Origin: Hydrolagus colliei | Taxonomy: Eukaryota | Direction of reading: 5' to 3' | Length of the DNA: 64,000 bases | Assembly (NCBI GenBank): GCA_035084275.1 | Contig: CM068745.1 | Location: 41,912,001 to 41,976,000, forward strand | Part shown: piece by piece, positions 16,207-49,463 of the stretch | Layout: the number at the start of each line of letters is the position of its first letter | Position numbering within the stretch: the first letter of the stretch is position 1 | The notes under the pieces: model-generated | Databases searched by the model: none | Seen by the model: only the letters and a program-made list of their open reading frames with translations | Told to the model about the DNA's origin: nothing | Made by a program: the position numbers and the translations under genes

Positions 16207-16627
16207 TCACATAAAAGAAAACATTTTCTGCAATGATTGTTTACAGCTTTTTTCCTTTCTGTCACATGGTCTCTCAGATTGTTCATTATATGGATTTTTA
16301 CGTGAATGCAAGCTGGGTCTTGAAGGACTCGTATTCACAAGTACTTGTTTGGTTAATTCAAATAATATTTTGCGAGGTGAGCTATTTTGACTGTGACCAT
16401 TCAACTTTCTATGACGCTCGGGGGATCTGTATTTCAATGTTGCTTTATCAGGAGAATCATTTTTCACTTTTAAAGGAGAAAATCTTTGTTTGATATTCTG
16501 GTTAACGTTATATATCAATTTCACTTCAGCTGGGTCATTTGTGTTATTCAAGTGCTCCGAGGTACCACACTCTATTATTGTTGTCTTGGGATTTGGAGAA
16601 ATGCCTGGATCATTGTTCTGAATGAAA
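16207..16627 (-). CDS. CD200: CD200-like copy A exon 5, long cytoplasmic tail (~140 aa)
   Basis: Strong polypyrimidine acceptor ..ttcattgattacag|; phase 2 matches the TM donor; open frame to TGA; homologous to the copy C tail. Five exons total 1242 nt (413 aa). Confidence 0.8.
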
Positions 16628-16736
16628 CTGTAATCAATGAAGGAAAAGAGGAAAAGTTAAAGTATCAACCAAATGGTAACATAAACTGAATATAAACTAA
16701 GACTAACTGCTTAATTCTCTGAATATCACTCGAATA

Positions 16737-17877
16737 CAGGTAGATCCCGATTAATGAATGCCCGGTTAATGAAGCTTTACTACAACGAGGGTTTCTATTT
16801 GTACCACTTCTCCGCTTAACAAATTTGCTATAATGAATGTTTACACACATTTTAAATCTCGCGGGCTTCTCATGCACAGCTTCTCTCTGGTTGACTCAGC
16901 ACCACACACTCAGACTTTAGCATGCCTCAGTTAAGCAGTGCAGTCCCTCCCATATGGGAGGATCTTAAGCGGCAGGATGCTTCGTGGCTTCAATAATTGT
17001 AAGTCAAGATATGGGGCGGGGGAAATAGAGAGATAGGGGAAAGGGGATAGAAGGGAATGGGGATAGAGAGGAGGGAGCGATAGAGAGGAGGGAGGGATAG
17101 AGAGATGGGGGGATAGAGAGATAGAGAGGAGTGGGGGATAAAGAGATAGGGGGGATAAAGAGATAGAGAGGAGTGGGGGATAAAGAGTTAGGCGGAATAG
17201 AGGGGGATAGATGGGAGTGGGGATAGAGAGGAGGAAGGGATAGAGAGATAGAGAGAAGGTGGGGATAGAATAGAGAGATGGGGGGGAATAGAGAAATAGA
17301 GAGGAGGCAGATAGAGAGACAGAGAGGAGGGCGGGATAGAGAGGGAGGGGAGGGGGGAATAGAGAGCAAGGGGAGGAGGGCATAGAGAGATAGAGATGGA
17401 GGTGGGGATAGAGAGGGTAGGTAGAGAGAAAGAGAGGGGGGTGGAGTGGAAAGAAAGAGAGGAGGGGAGGGGGGGGGGGGTAGAGAGAAAGAGGGGAGGG
17501 GGTAGAGAGAAAGTGAGGAGGGAGAGGAAGAAAGAAGCACGTCCCGAGTCAGGAAATGCCTGGGCTCAGGTTGCGATATTTTGGTACGGTGATTGTGAAG
17601 ACCTGGCCTGGAGCAGGTAGGATTGGCATTTTTGGTCCTGCATTTTTTGTCACATTCCGGATTCCGGAACTCCGGACGTTTGGCTGCTCAACCTGTACAC
17701 CGAAAATGTTAGCCCTAGGAACTGCTAGGAACTAAACTGATTTTAGCGGGGAGGCTCGGATCGGGGCGGCATTTTGGCTGCTGCCAAATACAATACAGTT
17801 AAACTCTCGCTGAACTAAATTTTCGCTTAACGAAGCGTTTAAAGTCCCTAACCCCTTCATTAAGCGGGGTCTGCCTG
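16737..17877. mobile_element. Tc1/mariner (Tigger/pogo-like) non-autonomous element in the last intron of copy A
   Basis: TIRs CAGGTAGATCCCGATTAATGAA and rc CAGGCAGACCCCGCTTAATGAA; TA left flank; absent at the homologous site of copy B (~26995). Confidence 0.75.
17025..17535 (+). repeat. Polypurine (GA/GGGATAGAGA)-rich simple repeat
   Basis: About 500 nt of almost pure purines with sparse T. Confidence 0.9.
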
Positions 17878-19059
17878 TGAATACAACAGAATTAGCCCAT
17901 CATCTAAAGTGTACCATCCCATTTGAGATTCTTTAATTCTGAAATCCAGCAACAGTCATTTGAACTTCCTGATATTTAATCTGCAATGATTTGTAATAGG
18001 AGTTGCGATTTTGCCTGCTTTTAAAAAAAAATATCTTTGGTCTTTTGTCACTTTTCACATGTGTAATGAGATAGCGAACGTTTAACCTGTTGCACTATAT
18101 TTATCAATTTAGATTTCCTAGCAGTTCCTAGCGCGAACATTTTCGGTGCACAGGTTGAGCAGCCAAAAGTCCGGAGTTCCGGAATGTGACAAACATTGCA
18201 GGAATAAAAATGCCAATCCTACCTGCTCCAGGCCAGGTCTTCACAATCACCGTACCAAAATATCAGACAGCTGTGTGACACATGTGGTAACCCATTACCA
18301 TGCTTAATAGTATCCAAACCAAGATAAAATTTCCATGCATCCCACCTACACATGTAATCCCAGAGATAGATTGTTGGAATGGAAAGCGCACACTACCCCT
18401 GGAAGACCACTTCCTGCTAACCTAATTCTGGAAATTTTTAGGAGCAGGTTGGCAAGAACCAAGGCTTGAGGACTCCAGATTGTATGTTGGGGTACTGCTG
18501 GAGTCTAACCAGCTAAAACCGCATAACTTGCCATTTATATTGCAAGTTTTCCCGCTGCTTATCTAGCTAGGATCACTCTACATTTAACAGTTTTGGCTTG
18601 CATGGTGAACAAGAGCTCAGTGGGGTGGCTCCCTGCCTCCAGTGACTGGTCTTCCCTTCCAGGTCCTGCTGATGAGCCAGACTGGCTGTGCTCTGGAATA
18701 CTGTGGACCCACCTGGCTCAGGAACCAGACTACCGACACCGACATTCCATTACCAGGCATGTCACCTTAGTGCCAGTGTGGCTCAAAGGAAACTCCATTT
18801 ATCTCTTCCCCAACAAATCTACCTCACTGCTTGATCCCAGACATCACATATGGGTCAGAAGATGCCTCTCCACTGCATCACCAGAAGCTCAGATACATAA
18901 ATAAAGACTGTTGCCTACAGGTATTGTGTGCCACAAGGTTGCCGTAGATTAGGAGCTTACTGTCCTTGAAGGGAGATAAACATGACCAGAGAGCTCTTCC
19001 TCTTCTAAGCACTATACATCAGGACAGTGTCCAGGCTGAAGTTGGTGACCACCATGACT

Positions 19060-19275
19060 CTGACGTAACAACAAATTACATTTGTATAACACCTTTCACA
19101 TCTGGAGGAGCTCCCAATGTGCTGGATAGTCAGGGATGTGCACCCGGACTGGTGGTTGGGATTAGGAGGGTTGGAGGGCTGGGAGGGCAAGTTTTCGAGG
19201 GTGACCAAACACACTGTCGAAGAGGTGGGTCTTCAGATGGGCAGTGAAGGAGGCAAGGGACTTTGGGATGGAGCT
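19060..19275 (-). mobile_element. L2 3' tail shared by all three paralogues (also ~27790-27995 and ~42185-42400)
   Basis: rc ctccatcccaaagtccctt..aagacccacctcttcgac..gtgaaaggtgttatacaaatgtaatttgttgtt matches other L2 tails. Confidence 0.65.
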
Positions 19276-19330
19276 TCTTTCTTTTGACTTTCATTTTTTG
19301 CAAGGTCCCAAATGTGCTCCATAATCTCCA
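19233..19330 (-). CDS. Copy A candidate alternative last exon (VEIMEHIWDLAKNESQKKEAPSQSPLPPSLPI*)
   Basis: In frame with the second donor CAG|gtaatt at 19496. Frame kept in B and C. Acceptor (gttaatttag) is weak. Confidence 0.35.
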
Positions 19331-19515
19331 CTAAATTAACTGACTTCAATTGAGAGGTACTGGACATGCTTCAGTTGGTCTCAATGCTAAGGATTTGTTC
19401 TTAATTTGTCTCCAGACATATTTAAAGAAATCAAGACATTTGTAGAAAACAATACAAGGAAATATAATATTATCATAAATATAATCGGAAATTACCTGCC
19501 CTGAGGTATACATAC

Positions 19516-19633
19516 CATTTGAAATTATTCCATTTATTTCTCCAGTACCAGATTGCCAGACATACCACCACAATACCAATAATTGTGGCAAATGCAATCC
19601 AAATAGGTGAGTTATCTTTCTGTTGATCCAAAG
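19516..19633 (-). CDS. CD200: CD200-like copy A exon 4, transmembrane
   Basis: ccttgcag| acceptor; IWIAFATIIGIVVVCLAIWYWRNKW; TG|gtatgt phase-2 donor. Confidence 0.85.
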
Positions 19634-20799
19634 CTGCAAGGAAAATATATTATAAAATAAACCCGGAAATGTGGTATTAATCCAGAAAAACCTCACTCAA
19701 TATCAGGGGCAATGATGGATGAAGTTCCACACTGTCTTATAATATGAAACTAAGTTATTTCTAGAAAGATGAATGGAATCTGGACCAACCAAGCTGATAG
19801 GACAAGAAACAGTAGCTTCATTTTAATATATCTACATTACAATGCACTCTGTCAATTAGCAGATATGAAAACCAAACTGCAGATTTGGGAATTATACTAG
19901 CGATAAGGGTATTCTTTGGGAGAATTAGGAATATCCATGTGAAACATTCTACTTGGAGATTTAAGGCTGTGGAGTACAGTACATAATAGGTTTGGGGCCG
20001 TCTTCAGTTGGAACTGTCTGAATTAAAAAATAGGGTTTTGCATTCCACGTTTTATGTTTTTAACGCTGACAATTTATATCATATAGAAGCCACCTGTCCA
20101 AACAACGATCCTCAAAACCACAAATGGAATATTATGTATTATCTTCTTACTGTGCCTTCTGCTTCCCTCCTAACTCCACCCTCTCCAACTCTCCTTCCCC
20201 CCACCCCCACCCAAGGTGCAGCGCCTTGGGACGTCCACCCGACGTGAAAGGCACTTTATAAGTGTAAATTGTTGTTGTTGTTGTTGTCCTCCGGACGTGA
20301 AAGGCTCACAATTAACATTACCAACAATTATGTGAAGATAGTCCGACATTACCTTCACATGATTAAATAAAGGATATAAATATCCCTAATGGAAGGAGTA
20401 TAAAAACCATAGAAGTGCTTTGGCCTAGATTTAGTAGAATATTTCCCACCGTTCACCACTAGAAATCAAGGCTTTTTTCCCTAGAGCCGAGAATCAGAAG
20501 TGACCCAATGCAGTCCCAATCTTTAGTAATGGGAACTGATATGCATGGGGGGTCATCCTATTGTGCATCAACGTAATATAAGCAGGGTCTTCAAGACAGC
20601 TCAAACCGTTTCACAGAATATACGGCAAAGTGAATTGACTATACAGTAATTTGTGGGTGAATGTTGAAGGTTATTGCAGAGAACACAGTTTGCTAAGGTG
20701 GTTTGGGTGAAGAAATCACTAGGGTAGTCTTATTTACTGAAACCATTTCTGCTGTGAGATTCTACAATTCTATGATGAATTATGAATAGGAATACATAC

Positions 20800-21105
20800 A
20801 TGTTGTTTCAAGAAAATCCTCTAAAGTGATTGCCCTTTCCAGAGCTGGATGATTCACCACACAGATCACTTTGGAATTAGCAGCATCAGCTGTAGCCACC
20901 GTCAGATTGCTCGTAATCTTTACTCTTCTGTCGAGGTCCATTGTTGAGGATTGAATGGACAGTACCTTCACATTGCCTGTTGTATTCCACGTGATCACTG
21001 GGGCTGGTCGTCCAGTGGCTGAACAAGTCGCCTCAAAACCATAATAACCACTCCTATTTGGAGCAGTGTCAGTGGGCCTGAACTGTAATGTTGGTTCAGG
21101 TTTCA
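20800..21105 (-). CDS. CD200: CD200-like copy A exon 3, IgC domain
   Basis: TCSATGRPAPVITW..ITSNLTV..VICVVNHP resembles CD200 TCSATARPAPMVFW..VICQVLH. aag| acceptor, T|gtatgt donor. Confidence 0.9.
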
Positions 21106-21687
21106 CTTGCAAGTAAAGAAAAGGAAAAATTTTAAATAATATAATAAATCTGAATCTAAAGTTTGTTACCGGTGTCATTCATTGTAAACAGCACTACAAT
21201 GCCTGCAAAGAAACATACACCATACTACACTTAATTGAGGTATCTTCAGCAGTACAAGTAGTCCAAATCCCTTTCACTGTGAAGAACAATATAACCAACT
21301 TCAATTTATATAGCGCCCTCCATGCCGGATGGCATCTCAGAGCGCTTGAGAGGTCTACAGCTATTAACCAATAGTTGTAGACCTCTGTGATATAGCAGTT
21401 AATCCTCTGTCATATAAACATTGTGGTAATATTTAATATTTTGCATGACAAGACAAACACAAACTTAGCTTCAACTGTTTAGACATGTAATAAGACACCT
21501 AACAACAAATACCAATTTATGCCTGTAATAAGGAGTGTCCTATCAACCTCAGTCCCAAAATAATCGACTTTGCTTATTGAAGTAGCTGCAGACTGATATA
21601 GAACTTCTAATTACCAGCGACTAATCTTAGTAACTCTCATTTCACATACATGTTAAGTACAATTCTTGTTTTTAAATCACTACCTAC

Positions 21688-22029
21688 CATTCACCGAAAG
21701 GCAGGTTTTCCCAACTTTTGCTCCATCTGGGAATGTATTGAAGAGACATTGATAACATCCTTCATCTTCAAACCCCATTCCAAAAAGTGTAATTATGGAC
21801 TCCGTTACTTGTGATGGGATGAAAGCTGCTCTACCTTTAAATGATCCGAATATATTTGATCCATATTTTTCACTAAATGTAGCCATGTTTTTAAATCTTC
21901 TACCACCATTCATCATTTGCCAGGTGACTTGTAGAACCTCATTCGACCCCATTAATGCACATTTGAAGGTGACATTACCCCCTAAAACTGCTTCATGTTT
22001 CGCAGATATTCTCACATTCTGTGCTGAAC
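21688..22029 (-). CDS. CD200: CD200-like copy A exon 2, IgV domain
   Basis: QVTWQ..KNMATFSEKYG..EDEGCYQCLFNTF..GKTCLSV matches CD200 motifs (VTWQK, ENMVTFSENHG, EDEGCYMCLFNTF, GTACLTV). Phase 1-1 splice sites. Confidence 0.9.
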
Positions 22030-22711
22030 CTATAATACAGAGAGAGTATTTTAAACATATGTTAGTTTTAGATTGAAATCTTTGCTAATATTATACAGTA
22101 TAATGTACAAAAAAATATAAGTTTTACCAGACTTCAGTGCAGACAGGAAACAAAAGGGTAGGAAACAATTTTATTTTCCGAGTGTGGTGTAATCATGAAA
22201 ATCTTTGCGTTGATATAATGCAGATAATGTCAAGAACATCTCAAATAGCTTCACAATGTGAACAGTAACTGCCTCCAAGGTGAACCAATTAATCTAGTCC
22301 AGGTCTCCTGTTCAATCCCCATATCTCCTAGAGTTTATCCTCTTCAAATATGTATATAATTCACGAACTACTTTCTATTATTTCCATTTGCTCTTGTGAT
22401 GGAATCCCAAACCTTTTTGAGACTAACCTGACTGCTGAGAGTTCTTAAATTTAAAATAATATTAAAAATAATAATAAACCTTGCAATTTCATTTGGTGCC
22501 TTATCCTGTATTCGAGCTAAAATTCTATCTATCACGTTCTTATAAAAAATATAATCACAGAATATTTTTGCATCGTATTACCAGAGCAAACAATCGCAAT
22601 GTCATATTTCTGAATCGAAGTGTAAGATAATGCAGCTCTAATCTTGTCACACATTTTAAACATCTCCTAATGTTTCCCCTAAACTTTGTAAATAACACAG
22701 TGAAGACTTAC

Positions 22712-22766
22712 ACAAGTGTCCAGTGAAGATTTGCAAGATGATCACTTGGATGCCTAAAGTTTTCAT
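22712..22766 (-). CDS. CD200: CD200-like copy A exon 1, signal peptide MKTLGIQVIILQIFTGHL
   Basis: 55 nt from ATG to T|gtaagt; equivalent exon present in all three copies. Confidence 0.85.
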
Positions 22767-23859
22767 TTTTCCCTGAACACCAGCTGTGAAACTGTGGCAA
22801 AAACCTTTAAACTTCCTCACGTTTTATGTAGATTTGTAATTTGAATTATCCAATGAGAGACATGCATTTTACGAAATTGATTGTCTCAGTCACCAATTGG
22901 TTACAACTGCAGATACTGTACAGGAATTAATGTTTAACCGCTGTGGGTGGGTTTGAATCCAGGATAATTATACTTTGCAATGCAGTTTGGGGTCATTGGG
23001 AAAAGTGAGCTCAAAAGGAGGTTTGAATTCAGTGATAAACCTGTAAATATTCCGTAACTTTCAAAATATGTTGCTCCTCCTTCGTTAAACTGCAGATAAA
23101 CCACGTGGATCTGAAATATGAAAGTGAATGTAAAATGATCCACTTGATGTTCTGTCGCAACAGAAACTTGTTAAAGTTAGTGGATGATCAGACCCAGCTC
23201 TTCCCTCACTCACTCCAGCAATAACTGGGTGTGAGGGACCAATTGAGAACACTATCAGGGACGCTAGCCATATACTGTAGGGCAGCTCTGTATTCCTTCA
23301 ATCTTTTAATCTGAATATTAATTCCAGTTGAGCAGTAGATCAGACATTAACAGCTAAACTCTGGAGTTTACAAACAATAATTTGTGGGAAAACAGTTCAG
23401 GAAGTGGAGTCAGATATCAACACTGTTCACGCCTACTTGGCAATGACATTTGTACAACATGGAAGATCACTGGTTAACAAATCAAATCAAAGGATGCACT
23501 ATTTGAAAGATGCCATTGTAAACTAAAAAAATATATAATCTCCTGATTGATTCCAGCAAACTCGGCATGGAATGAGAATTGAGTCAATGAGCACTTGTTC
23601 CACAAACTCATCTGGAACCAATGCACAATCTATAACTACTTCTTCACCAGAGTAAAGGCATGTCAATGTTGGAAATCAAACTACAAGCCTCAAATCAACC
23701 ATGGCCTTGGAAAAGGTAATTTTTTTAAAGAAAAGACGTTGTAGAAATTGCAAAATTCTTCACATTTTCAAAGTACAGTGAAGGTCCATATATGGAACAA
23801 TCTGAGGCACCATATAACAGAAAGGAAAAGAGTTGACCTCTCTCCCCAACACAATACCC

Positions 23860-24145
23860 GTTGCCTTTGCTCCTCCGGTTCTGGTCTCCTCCTTGTCCTC
23901 CACTCAACTATCAGCGGCCGTGCCTTCTGCCACTACGTCCCAAACTCTGGATCGCTTCCTCACTCCCTTCGCCTCGCCTCCTCTCTTTCTAGTTTTAGGA
24001 CTCAGCTGAAGACCTTTTCGACCGTGCCTTCGGTCACCTTTTTACCCCTCCCCCTGGCTCGGGCCCGGGATCCAATGTTGTGAAACACTCTGAGACGCCA
24101 TCCAGCATGGAGGGCGCCTATATAAATCAAAGTTGTTGTTGTTGT
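23860..24145 (+). mobile_element. L2 3' fragment
   Basis: TISGRAF..LW..P.SLRLASSL..LKT motif and gttgttgtt tail. Confidence 0.7.
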
Positions 24146-26100: not shown

Positions 26101-26756
26101 GACGTTTAGTTGGCTAGCACTTGTTCATGCATTCATCACATCAAGGCTCGACTATGGGAACTCTCTCCTCACTGGACATGGCATGAATGTGGTGTAGAAA
26201 ATATATTTGAGTGTCAAACAAGGCGCCAAGGCTCAGCACTGGCTCAGTGAGGTGCAATGTGCATCCTGAGACGGTAATGCTTTTTCTTGGAAAATATATA
26301 TTTATTGATCAACATATTTGGTATCGAAGAAATACAAATAAAACAACATCTTCTTTTCCATTTTCCAGATACAGAACAGCATTATGTTGTTGATAAGAAT
26401 TAGGTATGGACATATCTTCCCCACACACAGGTTATGTACAGATTTTTCAGAGGATACTCCCTTTAAAACCGTTGGCAGTAGCCACCTGTGTGCACTACAC
26501 CTTGATAAGATCACTTGCAACTTTCGGAAGAGGCCCCGATGTGCACCGTACACGCACAGGTTGATCGTTCATACATTTTCAGGACTCACTTTGGATATAT
26601 GTCAAGCGTCCTTCACAGGTACACTCCAGGTGGATTTTTCTGTGAGAGCCCAGGAATAGGCAGAGTGTCGTGACAGTGGGTCCCTCTTTCAATGTTACTT
26701 TCTCGGGGGAGTCATTTTTCACTTTTAAAGGAGAAAATCTTTGTTTGATATTCTGG

Positions 26757-26889
26757 TTAACATGAGATATCTTTCTCTTTGGCTGGATCATTTTGCTTAT
26801 TCAAGGGCTCCAATGTACTACTCTCTACTGTTGTTGTTGTTGTTGACTTGGGATTTGGAGGAATGCCTGGATCATTGTTCTTAATCAAA
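26757..26889 (-). CDS. CD200: CD200-like copy B exon 5, truncated tail (LIKNNDPGIPPNPKSTTTTTVESSTLEPLNKQNDPAKEKDISC*)
   Basis: Acceptor conserved; a net 2-nt deletion versus A gives TAA at 26759-26757. Total 954 nt (317 aa). Confidence 0.7.
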
Positions 26890-27952
26890 CTGTAATCAAT
26901 GAGGGAAAAGAAAAGTCAAAGTATCAACCGAATTGTAATATAAATTAAATATAAAGTATGACTAACTGCTTCATTCTCCGAATATCTCCCGAATACATAC
27001 AACAGAATTAGCCCATGATCTAAAGTGCACCATGCCCTTTCAGGTTCTTTAATTCTAAAATCCAGCAACAGGCATTTGAACTCCCTGATATTTAATCTGC
27101 AATGACCTGTAATAGGAGTTGCTAATTTTGCCTGCTTGAGGACTCCAGATTGTGTTGGAGTACTCCTGCAGTCTAACCAGCTAAATCTGTTTAACTTGCC
27201 ATTGTTACTGCAAGCTTTCCCACTGATGGTGTCCTGACGTGAAAGGCAGTATACAATTGTAATTTTGTTGTTGTTGTTGCTTATCCAGATGGGATCACTC
27301 TACACTTAACAGTTTTGGCTTGCATGGTGAACAGGAGCTCAGTGGGGTGGCTCCCTGCCTCTAGTGACTGGTCTTCGCTTGCAGGTCCTGCTGATGAGCC
27401 AGACTGGCTGTGCTCTGGAATACTGTGGGCCCACCTGGCTCAGGAACCAGACTACCAACACCAATATTCCATTACCAGGCATGTCACCTTCGTGCCAGCG
27501 TGGCTCAAAGGAAACTTAACTTATCTCCTCCCCAACATATCAGACTCACTGATTCAGATTCATCCTTGACATCGCAGATGGGTTGGGAGATGCCTGTCTG
27601 CTGCATCCCCAGGAGCACAGATACATAACTAATGAGTGTTGCCTACAGGTATTGTGCACCACAGGTTTGCCCTGAGACCTTGCTGTCCTTGGAGAGATGA
27701 ACATGACCAGAGAGCTCTTCCTCTTCTCAGCACTATACATCAGGACAGTGTCCAGACTGAAGTTGGTGACCACCATGACTCCGAGGAAACAACAACAAAT
27801 TAAATTTGTATAACACCTTTCACATCTGGAGGATGTCCTAATGTACTGGATAGTCAAGGATGTGCCCCCAGTCTGGTGGTTGGGAATAGGAGGGTTGGAT
27901 TCCTGGGAGGGTAAGTTTAGGAAGGTGACCAAATCGTCGAACAGTGGGGACT

Positions 27953-28050
27953 TCAGATGGGCAGTGAAGGTGGCAAGGGACTTTGGGATGGAGCTTCTTT
28001 CTTTTGACTTTCATTTTTTGCAAGGTCCCAAATTTGCTCCATAATCTCCA
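27953..28050 (-). CDS. Copy B candidate alternative last exon (VEIMEQIWDLAKNESQKKEAPSQSPLPPSLPI*)
   Basis: Homologue of 19233-19330; the upstream second donor is weaker here (CAG|gttatt). Confidence 0.28.
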
Positions 28051-28236
28051 CTAAATTAACTGACTTCAATTGAGAGGTACAGGACATGCTTCAGTTGGTC
28101 TCAATGCTAAGGATTTGTTCTCAATTTGTCTCCAGACATATTTAAAGAAATCAAGACATTTGTAGAAAGCAATACAAGGAAATATAATATTATAATAATA
28201 TATAATCAGAAATAACCTGCCCTGAGGTATACATAC

Positions 28237-28354
28237 CATTTGAAATTATTCCATTTATTTATCCAGTACCAGATTGCCAGGCATACCACCACTATACCAA
28301 TAATTGTGGCAAATGCAATCCAAATAGGTGAATTATCTTTCTGTTGATCCAAAG
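28237..28354 (-). CDS. CD200: CD200-like copy B exon 4, transmembrane
   Basis: ttacag| acceptor; IWIAFATIIGIVVVCLAIWYWINKW; TG|gtatgt donor. Confidence 0.83.
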
Positions 28355-29527
28355 CTGTAAGTAAATGTTGGAAACCATATTATAAAATAAACTTTGAAAT
28401 GTGGTTATAATCCAGAAAAACCTCACTCAATATCAGGGGCAATGATCGATGAAGTTCCTCACTGTCTTGTAATATGAAACTAAGTTGTTTCTCAAAAGAT
28501 GGATGGATTCTGGACCAACCAAGCTGATAGGATAAGAAACAGTAGCTTCATTTTAATGTATCTATGGAATGAAACTCTGTCAATTAGCAGTTATGAAAAC
28601 CAAACTGCAGATTTGGGAATTATACTGGTGACAAGGGTGTTCTTTGGGAGAAGGAGGAATATTCATGTGAAAATTTCCTCTTGGAGATTTAAGGCTGTGG
28701 AGTACAGTACATAATAAGTTTTAGGCCGTCTTCAGTTGGAACTGCCTGAATTAAAAAATAGGGTTTTGCATTCCAAGTTTTCTGTTTTTAATGTTGACAA
28801 TTTATATCATACAGAAGCCACTTGTCCCAATAACAATCCTCAAGACTACAGATGGAATATTATATATTATACTGAATATATATCATCTCCAACCATGCCT
28901 TCTGCTCCCCTCCAAACTCCACCCTCTCCTACTCTCCTTCCCCCTAACCCGAATGCCCCCCCTTCCCCACCACCCCCCGGCCCCTGCTCGAGTTCCGACC
29001 TAACTGTTCAGCACCATGGGACGTCCTCCCAACATGAAAGGAGCTCTAAAAATGTAATTTTGTTGTTGTTATTGTATATCTACCTTCACATAATTAAATA
29101 AAGGATATAAATATCCCTAATAGAAGGAGTATAAAAACCATACAAATGCATTCGCATAGATTCAGTAGAATATTTCCCACCGTTCACCGTTAGAAATTAA
29201 GGCCTTTTTTCACAAAAAAGCCGAGACTCACAAGTGACCCAATGGAGATCTTTAGTAATGGGAGCTGATATGCATGGGGGTCATCCTATTGTGCATCAAT
29301 GTAATGTAAGCGGGGTCTTCGAGACAGCTCAAATTGTTTCACAGAATATACTGTAAAGTTAATTGACTTTATAGTATTTTGTGGGTGGATGTTGAAGATT
29401 ATTGCAGAGAACACAGTTTGCTAAGGTGGTTCAGGTGGAGAAATCAGTACAGTAGTCTTGTTGATTGAAAGCATTTCTGCTATAAGATTCTACAATTCTA
29501 TGATGAATTATGAATAGGAATACATAC

Positions 29528-29833
29528 ATGTTGTTTTAAGAAAATCCTCTAAAGTGATTTCCCTTTCCAGAGCTGGATGATTCACCACACAGATCACTTT
29601 GGAATTAGCAGCATCAGCTGTAGCCACCGTCAGATTGCTCGTAATCTTTACTCTTCTGTCGAGGTCCATTGTTGAGGATTGAATGGACAGTACCTTCACA
29701 TTGCCCGTTGTATTCCACGTGATCACTGGGGCTGGTCGTCCAGTGGCTGAACAAGTCGTCTCAAAACCATAATAACCACTTCTATTTGGAGCAGTGTCAG
29801 TGGGACTGGACTGTAATGTTGGTTCAGGTTTCA
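29528..29833 (-). CDS. CD200: CD200-like copy B exon 3, IgC domain
   Basis: ORF 29508..29903; 306 nt, near-identical to copy A. Confidence 0.88.
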
Positions 29834-30710
29834 CTTGCAAATAAAAAGGAAAAATGTTAAATAATATAATAAATCTGAATCTAAAGTTTGTTACCGGTGT
29901 CATTCATTGTAAACAGCACTACAATGCCTGCAAAGAAACATACACCATACTACACTTAATTGAGGTATCTTCAGCAGTACAAGTAGTCCAAATCCCTTTC
30001 GCTGTGGAGAACAATATAACCAACTTCTGTAGACCTCTGTGATATAGCAGTTAATCCTCTTTAATATAAACATTCTGGTAATATTTACTATTTCGCATCA
30101 GAAGACAAACACAAACTTAGCTTCAACTGTTTAGACATGTAATAGACACCTAACAACAAATAACAATTCATGCTTGTAACAAAATACAGAATATACTGTA
30201 AAGTTAATTGACTTTATAGTATTTTGTGGGTGGATGTTGAAGATTATTGCAGAGAACACAGTTTGCTAAGGTGGTTCAGGTGGAGAAATCAGTACAGTAG
30301 TCTTGTTGATTGAAAGCATTTCTGCTATAAGATTCTACAATTCTATGATGAATTATGAATAGGAATACATACATGTTGTTTTAAGAAAATCCTCTAAAGT
30401 GACCTCTGTAGACCTCTGTGATATAGCAGTTAATCCTCTTTGATATAAACATTCTGGTAATATTTACTATTTCGCATCAGAAGACAAACACAAACTTAGC
30501 TTCAACTGTTTAGACATGTAATAGACACCTAACAACAAATAACAATTCATGCTTGTAACAAAAGGAGTGTCACATCAACCTCAAAATAATCCACTTCGGT
30601 TATTGAAGTACCTGCAGATTGATATAGCACTTCTAACTACCAGCGATTAATCTTAGCAACTTTCATTTCAAATAGATATTAAACACTATTTTTTAAAAAT
30701 CAGCACCTAC

Positions 30711-31052
30711 CATACACCGAAAGGTAGGTCTTCCCAAACTTTGATCCTTGTAGTAGTAGATTGAAGAGACATTGATAATATCCTTCATCTTCAAACCCCA
30801 CTCCAAAAAGTGTAATTATGGACTCCGTTACTTGTGATGGGATGAAAGCTGCTCTACCTTTAAATGATCCGAATATATTTGATCCATATTTTTCACTAAA
30901 TGTAGCCATGTTTTTAAATCTTCTACCATCATTCATCATTTGCCAGGTGACTTGTAGAACATCATTCGACCCCATTAATGCACATTTGAAGGTGACATTA
31001 CCCCCTAAAACTGCTTCATATTTCACAGATATTCTCACATTCTGTGCTGAAC
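30711..31052 (-). CDS. CD200: CD200-like copy B exon 2, IgV domain (second disulfide lost)
   Basis: ORF 30700..31038; 342-nt exon, same length as A; reads EDEGYYQCLFNLLLQGSKFGKTYLSV. Confidence 0.88.
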
Positions 31053-31747
31053 CTGTAATACAGAAAGAGTATTTTAAACATATGTTAGTTTTAGATTGAT
31101 ATCTTTGCTAATTTTATACAGTATAATATACTAAAAAAGAATATTTTTTACCAGACTTCAGTGCGGACAGAAAACAAAAGTGTAGGAAACAATCTTATTT
31201 TTCCGAGCGTGGTGTAATCATGAAAATCTTTGCATTGATATAATGCAGATAATGTCAAGAACATTTCAAATAGCTTCACAATATGAACAGTAACTGCCTC
31301 CAAGGTGAACCAATTAATCTAGTCCAGGTCTCCTGTTCAATCCCCATATCTCCTAGAGTTTATCCTCTTCAAATATGTATATAATTAATGAACTACTTTA
31401 TATTGTTTCCATTTATATTGTGATGGTATCCCAAACCTTTTTGAGACTAGCCTGACTGCTGAGAGTTCTTGTCCACACACATATTTTAAATAATAATAAT
31501 AAACCTTGCAATTTGATTTGGTGCCTTATCCTGTATTCAAGCTTAAATTCTATCACGTTCTTAACAAGATATAATCACAAAATATTTTACATCGTTTACG
31601 AATACTGTATTGTATTACCAGAGCAAACAATCGCAATGTCATATTTCTGAATGGAAGTAACTATGATAATGCAACTATAATCTTGTCACACATTTTAAAC
31701 ATCTAATGTTTTCCCTAAAATTTGTAAATAACACAGTGACGACTTAC

Positions 31748-31802
31748 ACAAGTATCCAATGTATATTTGCAAGAAGATTAGGTGGATACCAAAAGTTTTC
31801 AT
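31748..31802 (-). CDS. CD200: CD200-like copy B exon 1, signal peptide MKTFGIHLIFLQIYIGYL
   Basis: 55 nt from ATG to T|gtaagt; homologous to copy A exon 1. Confidence 0.8.
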
Positions 31803-40783: not shown

Positions 40784-41207
40784 TTAAACAACAAATTTTT
40801 CCTGCAATGAACGTTTACAGCTCTTTTCCTTTCTGTCACATGGTGCCTTAGATAAGTCCGGAAATGGACTTTTACGTAAATGCAAACTAGGCGTTGAAGG
40901 ACTTATAGTCACACATATGTGGTGGGTAAATTCACACAATGTTTCGTAAGGTGAGCTATTTCGACTGTGACAGGTTACATTTCTATGATATATAGGAGAT
41001 TTCCCATTCAATGTTACTTTGTCAGGAGAATAATTTTGAACTTTTAAAGGAGAGAATACTTCTTTGATACTCTGGCTAAAACGAGATATAAAGCTTTCTT
41101 CAGCTGGATCTTTTAGGTTATTAAAGTGCTCCAAAATGCCATTCTCTGGTATTGTTGTTGGTGTCTTGGTAATTGGAGGAATACCTGGTCCCTTGTTCCA
41201 AATCAAA
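40784..41207 (-). CDS. CD200: CD200-like copy C exon 5, long cytoplasmic tail
   Basis: ..ctcattgatcacag| acceptor, phase 2; ORF 40784..41206; homologous to the A tail. Total 1239 nt (412 aa). Confidence 0.82.
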
Positions 41208-41616
41208 CTGTGATCAATGAGGGAAGAGAAAAATAGTCAACATATCAATCAAATTATAATATAAGATGAATACAAACTCTGGCTAACTGTCTCATTCTCA
41301 GAATATCTATCGAACAGATACAACAGAATTAGTTCAACATCCAAATGCATCCTCCTATTTGAGGGCATTTATTCTTAAGTCCAGCAACAATTATTCGATC
41401 TCACTGATATTGTTGGAATGCAATGCGCACTCACCCACTGGGGAGATGCATCCTGCTTACCTAATTCTACAAATTTTTAGGAGCAGGTTGGCAAGAGACA
41501 AGGCTTGGGAAATCGAGTGTGCATTTTGGTACTGCTGGATTCTAACCAGCTAAAACTGGTACTGCTGGAGTCTAACCAGCCATAACTTGCCATTGAAATT
41601 GCAAACTTTTCAGTTA

Positions 41617-41704
41617 CCCAGGTAGCAAGCCCATGTGGGGCCCATATGGGCATGGATCAACCCAAATTGGCCCATATGGGGCCCATATGGGCTTGCTACC
41701 TGGT
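41617..41704. mobile_element. Short foldback MITE in the last intron of copy C
   Basis: CCAGGTAGCAAGCCCATGTGGGGCCCATATGGGC is inverted-repeated after a short spacer; TA on both flanks; absent in A and B. Confidence 0.75.
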
Positions 41705-42354
41705 TACTTATATAGCTAGGATCACAAAAGAGTTTTGTCTTGCTTGGTTAATAGGAACTGAGTGGGTTGGCTCCCTGCCTCCAGTGACTGGTCTTCCCTT
41801 CCAGGTCTTGCTGATGAGCCAGCCTGGCTGTGCTCTGGAATACTATGGACCCGCCTGGCTCAGGAACCAGCCTACCGACACTGACATTCCATTACCAGGC
41901 ATGTCACCTTGCTGACAGTGTGGCTCATAGAAAACTCCACTTATCTCCTTCCCAACAAATCCACCTCACTGCTTGATCCTGAACATCACAGATGGGTCGG
42001 GAGACATCACTTGGCTCCATCCCAGGAGCACAGATACATAACTAATGACTGTTGCCTACAGGTATTGTGTGCCACAAGCTTGGCCTGGGACCTTGCTGTC
42101 CTGAAGAACATGACCAGAGTGCTCTTCCCCTTCTCAGCACTATGCTACAGGACATGCTGAAGTTCGTGAGCACCACAATCCCGAGGTAACAACACATTAC
42201 ATTTGCACAGCTCGTTTCACATTTGTAAGATGTCTCAAATGTACTGGAGAGACAGAGATCCGCATTCAGTCTGGTAGTTGGGATTAGTTGGTTTGGAGGG
42301 CTTGGCGGGTAAATATCGAAGGGTGACCTAAAGCACAATTGAAGAGGGGGGTTT

Positions 42355-42458
42355 TCAGATGGGCAGTGAAGGAGACAAGGGACTTTGGGATGGAGATTCT
42401 TTTTTGAGAGTTTTGATTTCCTTTTTTGCAAGGTCCCAAGTACAATCCCTAATCTCCA
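42355..42458 (-). CDS. Copy C candidate alternative last exon (VEIRDCTWDLAKKEIKTLKKESPSQSPLSPSLPI*)
   Basis: Homologue of the A and B exons with a frame-preserving +6 nt; second donor CAG|gtaatt at 42603. Confidence 0.35.
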
Positions 42459-42622
42459 CTAAATTAACTGATTTCAATTGAGAGGTCCTGGACATGCTTC
42501 AGTTGCTCTCAATGCTGAGGATTTGTTCTCAATTTGTTTAGATATTTTAAAGGAAGCAAGACATTTGTACAAAGCAATATAAGGAAATATAACAGAAATT
42601 ACCTGCCCTGCGGAATACATAC

Positions 42623-42737
42623 CTTTTGAAATCATTCAATTTATTTCTCCAATTCCAGATCACCAGACATACCACTACTATAATAAGTATGGCAAAAGGA
42701 ATCAAAATAGGTAATTTCATTCTCCATTGATCTGAAG
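42623..42737 (-). CDS. CD200: CD200-like copy C exon 4, transmembrane
   Basis: LPILIPFAILIIVVVCLVIWNWRNK (ORF 42547..42771); AG|gtatgt phase-2 donor. Confidence 0.85.
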
Positions 42738-43730
42738 CTGTAAGTAAAATATTGGAAAACGTATTATACAATAAACCTGGAAATGTGGCATATTACTGCA
42801 CTTGGCTGCATCAATAACTAGTTGATAAAAGATAACAATCAATAGAAAAATCTCACTCAGTATGAGGAGCAATGATGGATGAATTTCCACACCATTTTGT
42901 AATATGATATTAAGTGTTTCCAGAAACATGTATGGCATTTGGACCAACCAAGCTTATATGCCAAGAAATAGCAAATTAATTTTTATGTATTTATGCAATG
43001 AAACTAAGTCCATTAGCAGATATGAACCAAAATTCTGCAGATTTGAGAATTCTACTGGTCGAAAGAGTGTTCTTTGGGAGAATTAGGAAAATCCAAGTGA
43101 ATTGGCTTGATGGAAAAATAGTGTTTTGTATTTTTAAATGTTAACCATTTATATTATACAGAAGCGACTTGTCCCAATAGTAATCCTCAAGACCACAGAT
43201 AGAATATTATGTATACATTTACATGAATAATTAAAGAATATAAATATCCTTAACAGAAGGAATATAAAATCCATAGAAATGCTTCATAGAAATGAATCCA
43301 TAGATCCATTAGGATGTTCCCTACCGTTCACTGTTAGAATTAAAGGCATTTTCATTAGAGCAAATGCTCATAAGTGACCCAATAGAGATCTTTTGTACTG
43401 TGAACTGATATGAAAGGGGACTCATCCCATTTGGCATGAATGTAGTTGAAGCATGCTCCATAAGTTCTTTAAAAATTAATTTGATAGATTCCAAAAGAGA
43501 AGGAATAATAATAATATCACATTGCTTTATCTAGTCTTCAAGACAGCTCAAACAGTTTCACAGAATAATGACTGACTATATTTTGTGGGTGAATATTAAA
43601 AGTTATTGGAACAAACAAGAGTTTGATAATGTTCAGGTGGAGAAAATCACCAGGGTAGACTTGTTGGCTGAAAGTATTTCCGCAGTAACATAGCACAATT
43701 CTATGATGAATTATGAACAGGAATACATAC

Positions 43731-44036
43731 ATGTTGTTTTAAGAAAATCCTCTAAAATGATTGCCTTTTCCAGAGCTGGGTGTTTCACCACACAGATCAC
43801 TTTACAATCAGCAGCATCAGTTGTAGCCACCGTCAGATTGCTTGTGATCTTTACTCTTCCGTCGAGCACCATTGTTGAGGATTGGGTGGACAGTACCTTC
43901 ACATTGCCCATTGTATCCCACATGATCACTGGGGCTGGTCGTCCAGTGGCTGAACAAGTCGCCACAAAACCATGATAACCATTTTTGTTTGCAGCAGCGT
44001 CAATGGGACTGAACTGTAGAATTGGTTCAGGCATCA
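43731..44036 (-). CDS. CD200: CD200-like copy C exon 3, IgC domain
   Basis: ORF 43711..44109; TCSATGRPAPVIMW..VICVVKHP; 306 nt. Confidence 0.88.
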
Positions 44037-44600
44037 CTTGTGATGGAAGAAAAGGAAAAATGGTAAATAATATAATAAATCTGAATCTATCATTTGTTAC
44101 TGTTGTCATTCATTGTTGGTATCACTAAAAAACCTGTAAAGAAACATACACCATTTTATACTTTACTGAGACATTGTAAGCAATATGGGATGTCAAATCC
44201 CTTTCACATTGTGAAGAACCATCAGCTGTAAATCTCTGTGATATAGCAGTTAATGTTCTTTGATATAAATTCTTTAAAATTTTAATTTTTACATAAATTT
44301 GATATATATTGTGGTAATAGTTAATATTTTGCATAACAAGATACAACCACAAAGTTAGCTTCAACTATTTAGACATATAAGAGACGCTTAACAGCAAATA
44401 CCAATTCTTGCCCATATCAAAAAGTGGGTCACGTCAACCTCAGTCCCCAAATAATCCACTTTTCCCTATTGAAGTACCTACAGATTGATATAGCACTTCT
44501 AATTACCAGCAATCAATATTAGCAACTCTCATTTAAAATAGATATTAAACACAATTCTTCATATTTGTTCACATTCATATTTTTTAAAATCAGCACCTAC

Positions 44601-44939
44601 CATGCACTGAAAGGCAAGTCTTCCCAAATTTTGTTCCATCTGGGAATGTATTGAAAAGACATCGATAACATCCTTCATCTTCAAACCTCAATTCAGAAAG
44701 ATTAATTATGGACTCCGTTACTTCTGATGGGATGAAAGTTGCTCTACCTTCAAATGATCCAACTATATTTGATCCATATGTTTTACTAAAAGTAGCTATG
44801 TTTTTTTCAGAATGACCATTTAACTTTTGCCAGGTAACTTGCAAAACGTTGTCTGACCCCATTAATGCACATTTGATGGTAACATTACCCCCTAAAATCG
44901 CTTCGTGATTTGCAAGTATTTTGACTTCCTGTGCTGAAC
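44601..44939 (-). CDS. CD200: CD200-like copy C exon 2, IgV domain
   Basis: QVTWQKLNGHSEKNIATFSKTYG..EDEGCYRCLFNTFPDG..GKTCLSV; 339 nt, phase 1-1. Confidence 0.9.
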
Positions 44940-45304
44940 CTGTAACACAAAGAAAGTATTCTGAACATACATTCTTTTCAGATTAAAATCTGTGCTCATT
45001 TTATACAGTACTGTACTTTAAAATAATAACTTTTGCTAGACTTGGGTGAACACAAGAAACAAAAGTGTAGGAAACAAATTTATTTTCCGACCGTAGCGCA
45101 ATCCTACAAATCCTTGCATTGATATAGCGTTGTTCTTGATTTATATCAAATAACTTCATAGTACGAGCAGTAACTGTCTCCAAGGTGAACCGACTGATCG
45201 AATTCAGGTCTCCTGTTCAATTCCCATATCTCTAAGTATTTATCCTCCTGCGATATCAATATAATCCATGAACACGTATTTGGTCACAAATTATATCCCG
45301 ACCA

Positions 45305-46510
45305 TCTGTGGCCAGCGCTCCCTCTGCCTCCTTGACCTATCCGCCGCCTTCAACACTGTGGACAACTCAATTCTCCTCCACCGACTCTCCTCCCACCCCA
45401 ACCTTCAATGGTTTTCCTCCAGGCCCCACGTCGTCTCGGGCGGCGTTCCTCAGAGTTCTGTCCTTGATCTCCTCCTATTCACCCTCTGCATGCTCCATCT
45501 TGGTGACATCATCCGCAGATATGGGGTAAATTTCCACATGTACGCGAATAACACCCAACTCTAACTTTCCACTTCCACCCTCAACTCAAGGACTAACGGC
45601 GTCTTTCCTGGCTGCCTGCCATCGACTCCTAGATGAGACAACGTTCTCGAGTTGAATGTCCGCAAGACTGAGGCCCTCCTGATTGGCTCGCGTCAGTGCC
45701 TCCACACCTCAGGTGCTGACAGCATCAGCATCCAAGGCTACACTCTCTACCTCTCAAAGCCAGTCAGGAATCTGGACTTCTTGTTTGACCCTGAATAGTC
45801 CTTCCTACCCCATATCCCCGCCATGACCAGTACTATCTTCCATTACCTTCACAACATCGCCAGACTCCACCACTGCCTCAACCCTCAGGCTGCCGAAATT
45901 CTAGTCCACACATTTCTCACATCAAGGTGCATCTATGGAAACTCCCTCCTCGTCGGCTTTTCTGGCTCTTCCCTTCACAAGCGGCAGATCTTCCAGAACT
46001 CTACAGCTCACGTCCTCTCCCGCACCAAGCTCCGCGACCACAACACTCCCACCCTTGCCTGGCTCCACTGGCTCCGCATCCGCCAGCGAATCGAATTCAA
46101 GATCTTCATCCTCACTTTCAAGGCTATTCACAGCCTTGCCTCCTACCTTACTGACCTGCTGTCCCCCTATGAAACTGCATGCCCCACTCCATTCAGCGGG
46201 CTCTGGTCTGCTCCATGTCCCCCACCCAGCCCGCCCTACCATTGGCGGAAGGACTTTCAGCCTCTCTGCCCCCATAATCTGGAACTCCATCCCACAGTCC
46301 CTTCGCCTCGCTTCCTCCCTTGCCTTCTTCAAGGTTGGTCCCAAGACCCTCCTCTTCGAGAGTGCTTCTGCTGCCTTCCCAACTCTCTCTCTCCCATCCT
46401 ATCTCTCTCCCACACCCCCTACTCTGCTTGGGTCCCGACCTGACTGTTCATTGCTTTGGGATGGCCTCCCCACATGAAAGGCGCTTTATAAATGTAATTT
46501 TGTTGTTGTT
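45305..46510 (+). mobile_element. L2 fragment in intron 1 of copy C
   Basis: LLDLSAAFNTVD, HMYANNTQL and LHWLRIRQRIEFKIF motifs. Confidence 0.85.
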
Positions 46511-46767
46511 GTTTGCTCTTGCTCTTGGAATCCCACTCTTTTTTGAGACTAGCCTGACCTCTGAGATTGCCCACAAGTATTAATATTATTATTAAATAAA
46601 TAATAATAAATTTAGAATTTGATACTGCATGTTTGAATCATCTCAAATCACTTCAATTAGTTGCTGTGCAAGCGTTTGTGTAAAGCAAGTGTTTTCTGGA
46701 TCGATTTGAGAACCAAATTTAACAAAAACTAAAGTGTTACCTTTTTTCAAAGTATTTACTGAAAACT

Positions 46768-47590
46768 ACAACAACAAAATTACAGCGCCTTTCACGTCGA
46801 GAGGATGTCCCAAGCCACTGAACAGTCAAGGGTCAGGACCCGAGCATGGTGGGGTGTGGGGGGCCAAGGTTGGGATGAGTGAGGGCAGAGAGGTAGAACG
46901 GCGACTGAAGGAACGGTGAAAGAGAAGGGTCTTGAGACCAGTCTTGAAGGAGGTAAGCAAGGAAGCAAGTTGAAGGGATTGTGGGATGGAGTTCCAAATT
47001 GTAGGGGGAAGAGAGGCTGAAAGCCTGGCCGCCAATGGTAGAGTGGGAGACATGAAGCAGGCTGGAGCATGCTGAATGGTGGGAGTGGACAGGTTGTTAG
47101 GGAGTCAGCAGGTCAGTGAGGTGGGAGGAGTCAAAGCCTTGGAGGGCCTTGAAGGTGAGGACAAGGATCTTGCATTTAATCCTCTGAGGAATGGAGAACC
47201 AGGGGACCTGGGCAAGGGTGGAGGTGATGAAGTCATGGACTCTAGTGTGGGAAAGGACACGAGCTGCAGAGTTTAGATGATCTGTGGAGCTTATGGAGGA
47301 AAGAGTTGGGAGGCCGACAAGGAGGAAGTTGCCGTAGTCGAGCCTTGAGGTGACAAGGGTGTAAGGGTTTGAGCGGTCGGAGAGTTGAGGTAGTGATCGA
47401 GACGAGTTATATTGCTGAGGTGGTGGAAGGCAGTGCTGGTCATGGCACGGATATGTAGGAGGAAGGATAGCTTAGGATCAAACATTCCACCCAGGTTCCT
47501 GACTGGCTTGGTGAGGTGCAGAGTGCAGCCGTGGATACTGATGCTGCCAGGGCCTGAGGTGCAAAGGCACTGACGAGAGCCTATCGGGAG
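46768..47590 (-). mobile_element. L2 fragment
   Basis: Antisense L2 ORF2 end motifs. Confidence 0.8.
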
Positions 47591-47599
47591 GGCCTCAAT

Positions 47600-48178
47600 T
47601 TTGAATGTCAACAAGACATTCTTGCATCAGGCGCTGGATTCATCAACCTCCATGGTTGCACACTCAACCTCACCAAGCTAGTCAGGAACCTAGGTGGCTT
47701 GATCGACCCTCAACTGTCTTTCCTGCCCCACATCCAAGCAATAACTCGCTCTGCCTTTCCCCACCTCCACAACATTCCCCGACTCCACCACTACCTCTGC
47801 AGCTCGTGTCCTTTATCGTGACCCCATCATTGTTGGCCAACTCCATTGGCTCCCATCAACCAGAGGAACCAATTCAAGATCCTGGTCCTCACATTTAAAG
47901 CCCTCCACAACTTCGCCCACCCTAAATCCATGACCTTCTTTCTCCTTACCAACCTATCCCCCCCTCCGCTCAGTAGGCTCTGGCCTGCTCCACGTTCCCA
48001 ACCCACCCACCCCACTATTGGCGGGTGAGCCTTCAGCCACTCTGCCCCCAACCTCTGGAACTCCGCAGTCCATCTGCCTCACCCCCTTCAAGTCTGGCTT
48101 CCTTCAAGTCTTGGAGCGCTCCGAGATGCCGTTCACCTTGGAGGGCGCTATATAAATCCAAGTTGTTGTTGTTGTTAC
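47600..48178 (+). mobile_element. L2 fragment
   Basis: FKILVLTFKALH..TIGG motif and (gtt)n tail. Confidence 0.8.
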
Positions 48179-49408
48179 TTAACATGTTGGAATGCACTGA
48201 TAGCCACTCACGCTCCCTAATTTTTTATAGCGGGACATCAGTAGTCTGATGTGTTAAGATTTCATCATGAAACTAGTTTGCCAATTACAGTTTCAAGAAA
48301 AGTTGATAAAGTTTGCTTACCCCACATGCTTATGTTTACCTAGCAGTAAGTAGGAATACGGTAATCAATTGATGCGTCGCTATTCTGGGTAATAATTCCT
48401 TAACAAAACAAGAATAAACTGGTGACACAATCAACGACTGTTTGTGGGACACTGCAGTGCGCAATAGACTGCTAAGTTTCACTCACTTTACATATGTTCT
48501 TGAGGCTCTTTGAGATGTCTCGAGGAAGTGCAAGGATTATTATTATTATTTATCAATGTAACTACTCAATGCGATTTAGGTTTAAGCCATTGAATGGGGA
48601 AATGCAGATCATTTTAAATTTCCCGCGTTGGGCTCTCCAATCGGTCGAGTTAAAAAAGCTGTTGCTGAGTACAAATTTGCATTTATAGATGCATTTGACG
48701 TTGGGAGGGCGCCTCACGATGAAATCTCTCAATTCAGCAAACACTTGCTGCAGAATATGTATTCACCCATTCCTTCCTTGTGAAATACATGAACTTTGTT
48801 GAGAACTGTTATTGAGCATTGATACTGCATTGAGAACTGGATAAGGAATAGGAACATCAAGAGATAGGGAAAGACAGTTCCAGAAAATAGGACTGAGATT
48901 AAAGAGTGGATTTGAATAACTGTCAGTAGTGGCATATACAGCTGGGGCTAAAAATGTGTATATCCAGACCAGACCAAGGGCTCCAAATAATATAGATATG
49001 CCACCTAAACATGTGCCTTCTCCCCTCAGAGGGATGCACTCTGCTGATCTAGTTCTTGAAAATATTAGGAGAATGTTGGTAACAGTCAAGGTTTGGGGAT
49101 CCAAGAGTGCACATTTAAACCAGCTGAAAAGGAACAATTATTTTTCAAATTCATTTTCACCTTAAAGGATAACTTGTGTTTTAAAATACTAAAGATTTGC
49201 TAAAGCTTCAATTCCATTACCTTCTTATAAAGATATAATCACAGAATATTTTTGCATCATTTACGAATATCGTATTACCAGAGCAAACAATCGCAATGTC
49301 ATATTTCTGAATCGAAGTGTAAGATAATGCAGCTCTAATCTTGTCACACATTTTAAACATCTCCTAATGTTTCCCCTAAACTTTGTAAATAACACAGTGA
49401 AAACTTAC

Positions 49409-49463
49409 ACAAGTGTCCAGTGAAGATTTGCAAGATGATCACTTGGATGCCTAAAGTTTTCAT
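49409..49463 (-). CDS. CD200: CD200-like copy C exon 1, signal peptide (same peptide as copy A)
   Basis: 55 nt from ATG to T|gtaagt; followed by a ~4.5 kb TE-rich intron 1. Confidence 0.82.

Follow-up and report, generated by a model that had tools for sequence, protein, structure and literature searches.

On the minus strand of a 64,000-nt stretch of DNA (contig CM068745.1, positions 41,912,001 to 41,976,000; hereafter the window) lie three tandem genes that resemble CD200 (OX-2), two of them with long cytoplasmic tails, raising the question of whether the triplet represents a new signalling system or an expansion of a known gene. The original prediction made from this DNA favoured the first answer, and proposed an undescribed paired-receptor-like system. 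That proposal is not upheld, as the long tail is also found in CD200 of the holocephalan Callorhinchus milii, the transmembrane (TM) segments are without charge, the tyrosine motif of the tail is ancestral, and the short-tailed copy is a truncated duplicate. The best overall explanation, and a probable one, is that the window is the CD200 locus of a holocephalan other than C. milii, twice tandemly duplicated, in which the long tail is ancestral. The triplet is a lineage-specific expansion of CD200 and not a new signalling system; the family, the architecture and a long-tailed orthologue are already public.

The window is AT-rich, repeat-laden vertebrate DNA without runs of N, and three sets of immunoglobulin (Ig)-type open reading frames (ORFs) on its minus strand resolve into three complete five-exon genes, here called A, B and C, with exons that encode, in order, the signal peptide, a V domain, a C2 domain, the TM segment and the tail. 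Gene A (16207..22766, minus strand) encodes a CD200 paralogue of 413 aa from exons at 22766-22712 (signal peptide), 22029-21688 (V), 21105-20800 (C2), 19633-19516 (TM) and 16627-16207 (tail and stop codon). Gene B (26757..31802, minus strand), a 3'-truncated partial duplicate of A, encodes 317 aa from exons at 31802-31748, 31052-30711, 29833-29528, 28354-28237 and 26889-26757, whereas gene C (40784..49463, minus strand), the CD200 paralogue nearest the ancestral state, encodes 412 aa from exons at 49463-49409, 44939-44601, 44036-43731, 42737-42623 and 41207-40784. The signal-peptide exons were located by a dedicated search and by reading the surrounding DNA. Every acceptor is AG and every donor GT, each gene shows the phase series 1-1-1-2 that is usual in Ig-superfamily genes, and internal stop codons are absent. 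Two Ig exons lie between the signal and TM exons of each gene, giving a V-set, C2-set and single TM helix architecture, and Pfam recognises V-set and C2-set_2 domains. The three intact V+C+TM genes of the original prediction thus hold at these positions, and the TM-to-tail junctions that it proposed (19516 to 16627, 28237 to 26889 and 42623 to 41207) are the phase-compatible ones with canonical sites. A tblastn search of the window with the C. milii protein recovers exactly these three copies, and a search of the window for a fourth CD200 copy gave nothing beyond an inverted piece of 5' flank that lacks exon 1. The triplet is no chance pattern, because the copies are whole-gene tandem duplicates, introns included, with identities of approximately 88% for A-B and 77% for both A-C and B-C.

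The relationship to C. milii is evident at the level of protein and locus. Among 5.8 billion proteins, the closest match to A, and the only close one, is the C. milii 'OX-2 membrane glycoprotein-like' protein of 413 aa (65% identity at 99% query coverage, tail included; 66% over the full length). The 90% cluster of this match holds NP_001279700.1/AFK11501.1, which is named from a deposited mRNA, XP_007901222.1, UniProt V9KVN7/K4G0N2 and an Ensembl entry, 'CD200 molecule', while the A, B and C proteins themselves are absent from the collection searched. A 32.5-kb stretch of the C. milii locus (MU249835.1, 46.52-46.55 Mb; L001 in the coordinates below) was read. Its five CD200 exons (L001 14339-14393, 17439-17777, 18262-18567, 20409-20514 and 22097-22532) translate exactly to XP_007901222.1, with junctions and phases that match those of the window genes, and the V domain of C is 84% identical to that of C. 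milii. On either flank of the CD200 genes, the C. milii stretch and the window run in parallel, with 73-84% noncoding identity, and the C. milii stretch contains one CD200 copy against three in the window. Collinearity on two flanks therefore identifies the window as the orthologous CD200 locus of a different holocephalan. In addition, the deposited mRNA of the C. milii orthologue contains the tail exon, and by analogy the long tails of the window genes are very probably spliced in.

The tail exon of A (16207..16627, minus strand) comprises 139 codons plus a stop codon and encodes a basic, Ser/Pro/Asn-rich sequence, and that of C (40784..41207, minus strand) comprises 140 codons plus a stop codon and encodes, besides the SPYETL motif and a C-terminal PCDRKEKSCKRSLQ, four [ST]P sites that are conserved. 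The tails of approximately 140 aa with a common C-terminal segment that were originally described for A and C are therefore present, with PCDRKEKSCKQSLQ in A and PCDRKEKSCKRSLQ in C located near the C-terminus. Because the single-copy C. milii gene has a long tail, the tail is ancestral rather than an innovation of the triplet; it represents the ancestral state of holocephalan CD200, and has been in public databases for years. When a profile of the A, C and C. milii tails was searched with HMMER at full sensitivity, C. milii CD200 was the only match in a set of 1.84 billion representative proteins. A literature search on CD200 in elephant shark, cartilaginous fish and teleosts, and on the evolution of CD200, nectins and BTLA, found no paper on a long-tailed holocephalan CD200 in the library consulted.

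How the triplet arose can be reconstructed in outline. A single ancestral holocephalan CD200 gene would have been tandemly duplicated twice, the first duplication producing C and the ancestor of A at a time that, from intron divergence (K=0.08-0.16 for A-B, 0.17-0.21 for A-C), would be close to the split from the C. milii lineage. The later of the two duplications was partial, with a breakpoint within the last exon, such that B was born without the distal half of the tail. Since then C has been conservative, A has remodelled the C-C' region of its V domain and lost its tail tyrosine, and constraint on B has relaxed. In the case of B, a tail-exon remnant is found at 26687..26889 (minus strand), and homology with A and C ends at 26687, corresponding to A coordinate 16432 (blastn alignments: A 16432-16738 with B 26687-26997, and B 26688-27092 with C 41007-41411). 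As homology stops in the middle of the tail exon, B arose by a partial duplication lacking the distal tail and the 3' untranslated region. A 2-nt deletion in B relative to A shifts the reading frame and brings an early stop approximately 45 residues past the membrane; the short tail that the original prediction described for this copy is thus accounted for by two events, the breakpoint of the duplication within the tail exon and the 2-nt frameshift. Elsewhere in B, both CD200-type cysteines are lost (C110Y and C128Y), the FG loop has changed from NTFPDGAK to NLLLQGSK, and the signal peptide has seven changes in 18 residues. Judged from these changes and from its truncated origin, B is most likely a decaying copy, although it might conceivably be a neofunctional short-tailed form.

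A number of further features of the locus touch on this history. The 5' regions of A (22528..23682, minus strand) and C (49213..50396, minus strand), each running from the promoter through exon 1 into the first part of intron 1, are 94.3% identical across 1185 nt, as compared with ~77% elsewhere, and the exon-1 coding sequences are identical, which marks a gene-conversion tract. This tract may hold A and C co-regulated; the equivalent region of B is just 77-86% identical. In their ectodomain exons, A and B are separated by a smaller synonymous distance (dS 0.034) than in their introns (K 0.08-0.16), a hint of exon-biased gene conversion between these two youngest copies. Between A and the neighbouring gene, part of the CD200 5' flank and intron 1 is repeated in inverted orientation on the plus strand (10616-11118 and 12205-13002), with 83-86% identity to 23523-23042 and 50236-49739; a copy of exon 1 was not found there, and the fragment is the remnant of a further rearrangement. 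The spacer between A and B (23757-26687) contains a reverse-transcriptase-like ORF at 25132-25359 (...YMDFQKAFNKVPHKRL...) bordering the breakpoint in the tail exon of B, so that the partial duplication may have had a retroelement as a participant. Intron 1 measures 682 nt in A and 695 nt in B but 4469 nt in C, where the excess (45273-49213) consists of dispersed repeats with many recurrences in the window, for instance around 36.1-36.7, 46-47.6, 56.7-57.2 and 62.3-62.7 kb, and also in the C. milii locus.

The three copies have not diverged in the same way. Among C, A and C. milii, the ratio of nonsynonymous to synonymous substitution rates (dN/dS) in the ectodomain is 0.41-0.61, significantly below 1 (p=0.0002-0.04), and these ectodomains are under purifying selection. 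The original prediction had called for such a check, and the result is divided, as neither the tail (0.9-1.4) nor the A-B ectodomain comparison can be distinguished from 1; for the latter, positive selection was tested for and the ratio of 1.28 (p=0.8) is indistinguishable from neutrality. Private V-domain changes number 16 in the A lineage versus 9 in C, and those of A are concentrated at residues 57-64 in the C-C' region (K57M, L58M, H62R, S63R, E64F and a 1-aa insertion), where charge is altered as well.

Three other explanations have to be set against this account, one being that the genes are nectin-like adhesion molecules and the long tail a nectin tail, a placement that the original prediction had itself named as its refuter. 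By sequence, the best PDB match is nectin-3 D1D2 (2.7e-22 for A, 4.4e-25 for C), with mouse CD200 only just behind it, and some related shark proteins are named 'nectin-3' or 'nectin-1-like' by NCBI. However, A, C and C. milii carry the CD200-type extra Cys pair of the V domain (EGC-Y-x-C ... G-x-x-C-L) together with CLFNTF and TCSATxRPAPxIxW, all of which are common to mouse CD200 and absent from nectin-3, and the cysteines are invariant in a 16-sequence CD200 alignment. There are two Ig exons here versus three domains in nectins, the C-termini (MFSFM in A, EKFVV in C and MVQIE in C. milii) do not fit the afadin-binding E/A-x-Y-V, and no similarity of the tail to any other protein was detected. 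In a maximum-likelihood tree with two nectins only as outgroups, the separation of nectin-1 and nectin-3 from every OX-2-like sequence has support of 100/97, with 100/99 for the holocephalan clade and 100/99 for A and B as sisters. The AlphaFold model of the C. milii orthologue, which stands in for the window proteins, has two Ig domains with a predicted local distance difference test (pLDDT) score >90 and a TM helix at 243-272, and its top Foldseek match is mouse CD200 (4bfi_B, E=4e-20, template modelling score 0.80), ahead of nectin-3. The nectin-like reading is thus largely refuted and highly improbable; on their signature motifs, the modelled fold, the tree and the orthologous locus, A, B and C appear to be members of the CD200 family, as first proposed. 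A further possibility is that the tail is translated yet without function, a drifting last-exon appendix that is open by chance while only the ectodomain matters. Much about the tail would suit such a reading, as its dN/dS is 0.9-1.4, amino acid identity among the tails is ~50% over their whole length versus 76-80% in the ectodomain, and nucleotide divergence (p=0.24-0.25) is at or above that of alignable introns (p 0.15-0.20). Pfam finds no domain in the tails of the window genes, homologues are confined to holocephalans, AlphaFold gives pLDDT <50 over residues 321-396 of the C. milii protein with weak helices at 306-319 and 397-412, and invariant columns are unclustered. Yet the ORF is open in A, C and C. 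milii, and all three indels between them (6, 3 and 3 nt) are in frame; in a neutral simulation, the tail ORF survives in 2-3% of cases at the full distance and 12-15% at half the distance, or ~0.002 jointly. Prolines are invariant at 10 of 12-14 positions as compared with 35% overall (p=0.0006-0.006), none of the three tails has lost any of the four [ST]P sites, and the exon is present in the C. milii mRNA. A functionless tail is therefore quite unlikely.

The remaining alternative is the one originally put forward, in which the paralogues form a self-signalling, paired-receptor-like set, with C inhibitory through an ITIM (a tyrosine-based inhibitory motif of immunoreceptors), A signalling as a variant with a long tail, and B acting as a decoy or as an activating partner. 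The ectodomains of A and B are 91% identical while their tails differ, the changes of A cluster in the C-C' region and those of B in the FG loop, and viral CD200 mimics exist that could drive divergence (PMC5413580). In addition, SPYETL in C fits the ITIM pattern at the position of SPYKIL in C. milii, and to this extent the description of C as ITIM-like was correct. The pattern [SIVL]xYxx[IVL] is matched once in C and once in C. milii (SPYKIL) and not at all in A or B, but 11-27% of shuffled tails also contain such a match, and the residues in question can be read as a YxxPhi endocytic signal too. Furthermore, SSPYETL in C aligns with SSPYKIL in C. milii and with SSPRKIL in A, where the tyrosine is replaced, and B is without the region; since C and C. 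milii both keep SSPYxxL, the motif is ancestral and was lost in A, and is not an innovation of C. Activating partners are characterised by a charged TM residue. In A, B and C alike, the TM segment is free of K, R, D and E, the juxtamembrane R is replaced by I in B, and the combination of a short tail with a basic TM residue that marks an activating member is found in none of the copies, and thus a paired-receptor set is not supported. The short tail of B is a product of the breakpoint and frameshift, the A-B dN/dS is neutral-like, the long tail of single-copy C. milii CD200 is by its nature independent of any paired set, and annotated gar and teleost OX-2-like proteins are also long-tailed (100-155 aa) with unrelated sequence. 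Taken with this evidence, the paired set is an unlikely explanation. Equally doubtful is the more elaborate proposal that holocephalan CD200 is bidirectional, with signals sent into the cell that bears it by a disordered, lineage-restricted 140-aa tail whose conserved tyrosine motif, Cys-x6-Cys end and four proline-directed sites would be the working parts, and that triplication split this function among a tyrosine-bearing ancestral C, a tyrosine-less A with a remodelled C-C' receptor face, and a tail-less B with a rewritten FG loop and no extra disulfide; if true, paired or decoy evolution would have taken place on the side of the ligand, with pathogens exploiting the CD200-CD200R axis as a possible driver.

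The preferred reading, a twice-duplicated holocephalan CD200 locus with an ancestral long tail, also has points that weigh against it. The PDB sequence search places nectin-3 slightly above CD200 (91.8 vs 86.1 bits), and the tree settles neither the inner branches of the CD200 group nor the order in which C, C. milii and A+B branch. The dN/dS of the tail cannot be distinguished from 1 in any pair, and clustering of its invariant columns into islands was tested and is not significant, so conservation is claimed for the prolines and [ST]P sites only; motif-level function of the tail would be read from three sequences. Expression and splicing of A, B and C are carried over from the C. milii orthologue, and for the window genes we infer both expression and any role of the tail. 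Lastly, the convergent neighbour gene described below is unconfirmed as BTLA, as the PDB search gave generic Ig matches only, and micro-synteny with mammals is unsupported.

On the reading that the window holds a duplicated CD200 locus, the V domain would offer a face for binding by an inhibitory receptor of CD200R type, carried by myeloid or lymphoid cells, as for CD200 elsewhere, and by the same analogy the GFCC' face of the V domain would be the expected site of contact. The tail, basic and mostly disordered by prediction, may serve in sorting or in regulation by proline-directed phosphorylation, with constraint that is weak and bears on particular residues, as suggested by the conserved positions and the predicted disorder. 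Its candidate elements would be the four [ST]P sites, one SSPYxxL that could act in YxxPhi sorting by AP-2 or as an ITIM, and a C-terminal Cys-x6-Cys segment that is predicted to be a weak helix. Such a tail would tune surface residence, or would provide CD200-intrinsic 'reverse' signalling.

Outside the three genes, an AATAAA signal for A is found at 15800..15805 (minus strand), approximately 400 nt past the stop codon, with equivalents at 40332-40337 for C and at L001 22903 for C. milii. On one side of the triplet, window positions 60328-63278 are collinear with L001 1-6043, which corresponds to the 5' part of a gene for a 419-aa Arf/Ras-family GTPase that in C. milii is transcribed divergently from CD200. 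On the other side, the region at ~0.8-7.5 kb matches the C. milii flank (L001 24386-30312) and contains a convergent single-V gene at ~2919-4230 on the plus strand, with the signal peptide MIWAVLAVVATCWLPG, a V-set domain at ~3085-3393 and a TM segment at ~4090-4230. The sole relative of its product in the collection of 5.8 billion proteins is C. milii LOC103184824, an uncharacterised protein of 226 aa. The convergent gene occupies the place that BTLA has beside CD200 in mammals, but is not identifiable as BTLA. No CD200R-like gene is present in the 64-kb window.

Of the known systems, C. milii CD200 is the closest to the window genes. It shares with them an orthologous locus, five exons, the splice phases and a V-C2-TM-tail architecture of 412-413 aa, and the tails align end to end at ~50% identity, with four [ST]P sites, a PC...EK.CK.SL end, and an NSSP core that is extended to SSPYxxL in C. 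milii and C. The differences are one copy versus three, proteins that are 65-70% identical, an A without a tail tyrosine and a truncated B. A long CD200 tail is thus the normal state in chimaeras, and the triplet offers a natural experiment, with a conservative C, an A that is altered in the C-C' region and lacks the tail tyrosine, and a truncated B.

The comparison with other vertebrates is less direct. Mammalian CD200 (mouse, 4bfi chain B) has the same V and C2 ectodomain, with the extra V-domain Cys pair, CLFNTF and TCSATxRPAP, but is only ~30% identical and has a tail of 19 aa (PMC10741515), as compared with ~140 aa in A and C and ~45 aa in B. The length of the mammalian tail had been given correctly in the original prediction; the accompanying premise that it is signalling-inert is dated, as release by gamma-secretase and beta-catenin binding have been reported (PMC10741515; see also PMC5413580), and the long-tailed genes provide a comparative angle on this CD200-intrinsic signalling. 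Ray-finned 'OX-2 membrane glycoprotein-like' proteins, for instance those of gar (P0025, 419 aa), Sparus (P0056, 418 aa) and Esox (P0053, 366 aa), combine a CD200-type V-C2 ectodomain with a Ser/Thr-Pro and basic-rich cytoplasmic tail of 100-155 aa that is unrelated in sequence to the holocephalan tail. Homology of the gar tail with the holocephalan tail was considered and rejected (hhalign probability 0.3%), and the ray-finned tails may have been acquired independently, or divergence may have erased any recognisable similarity. With C. milii, gar and teleost OX-2-like proteins all long-tailed, the 19-aa tail is a mammalian trait and does not define the family; given that the gar and teleost tails are long but of other sequence, the mammalian tail may be a reduced form.

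Nectin-3 (PDB 5b22, 4fom) has a similar D1-D2 sequence and fold and the TFPxG motif in the FG loop, but nectins differ in having a third Ig domain, no extra Cys pair, an afadin-binding C-terminus, and a role in homophilic and heterophilic adhesion. Paired immune receptors such as CD200R1/CD200R-like, SIRP and KIR resemble the triplet in being tandem paralogues with similar ectodomains and differing tails, one of them ITIM-like. Here, in contrast, there is no short-tailed member with a charged TM segment, the single motif is ancestral, and the short-tailed copy is a truncated duplicate.

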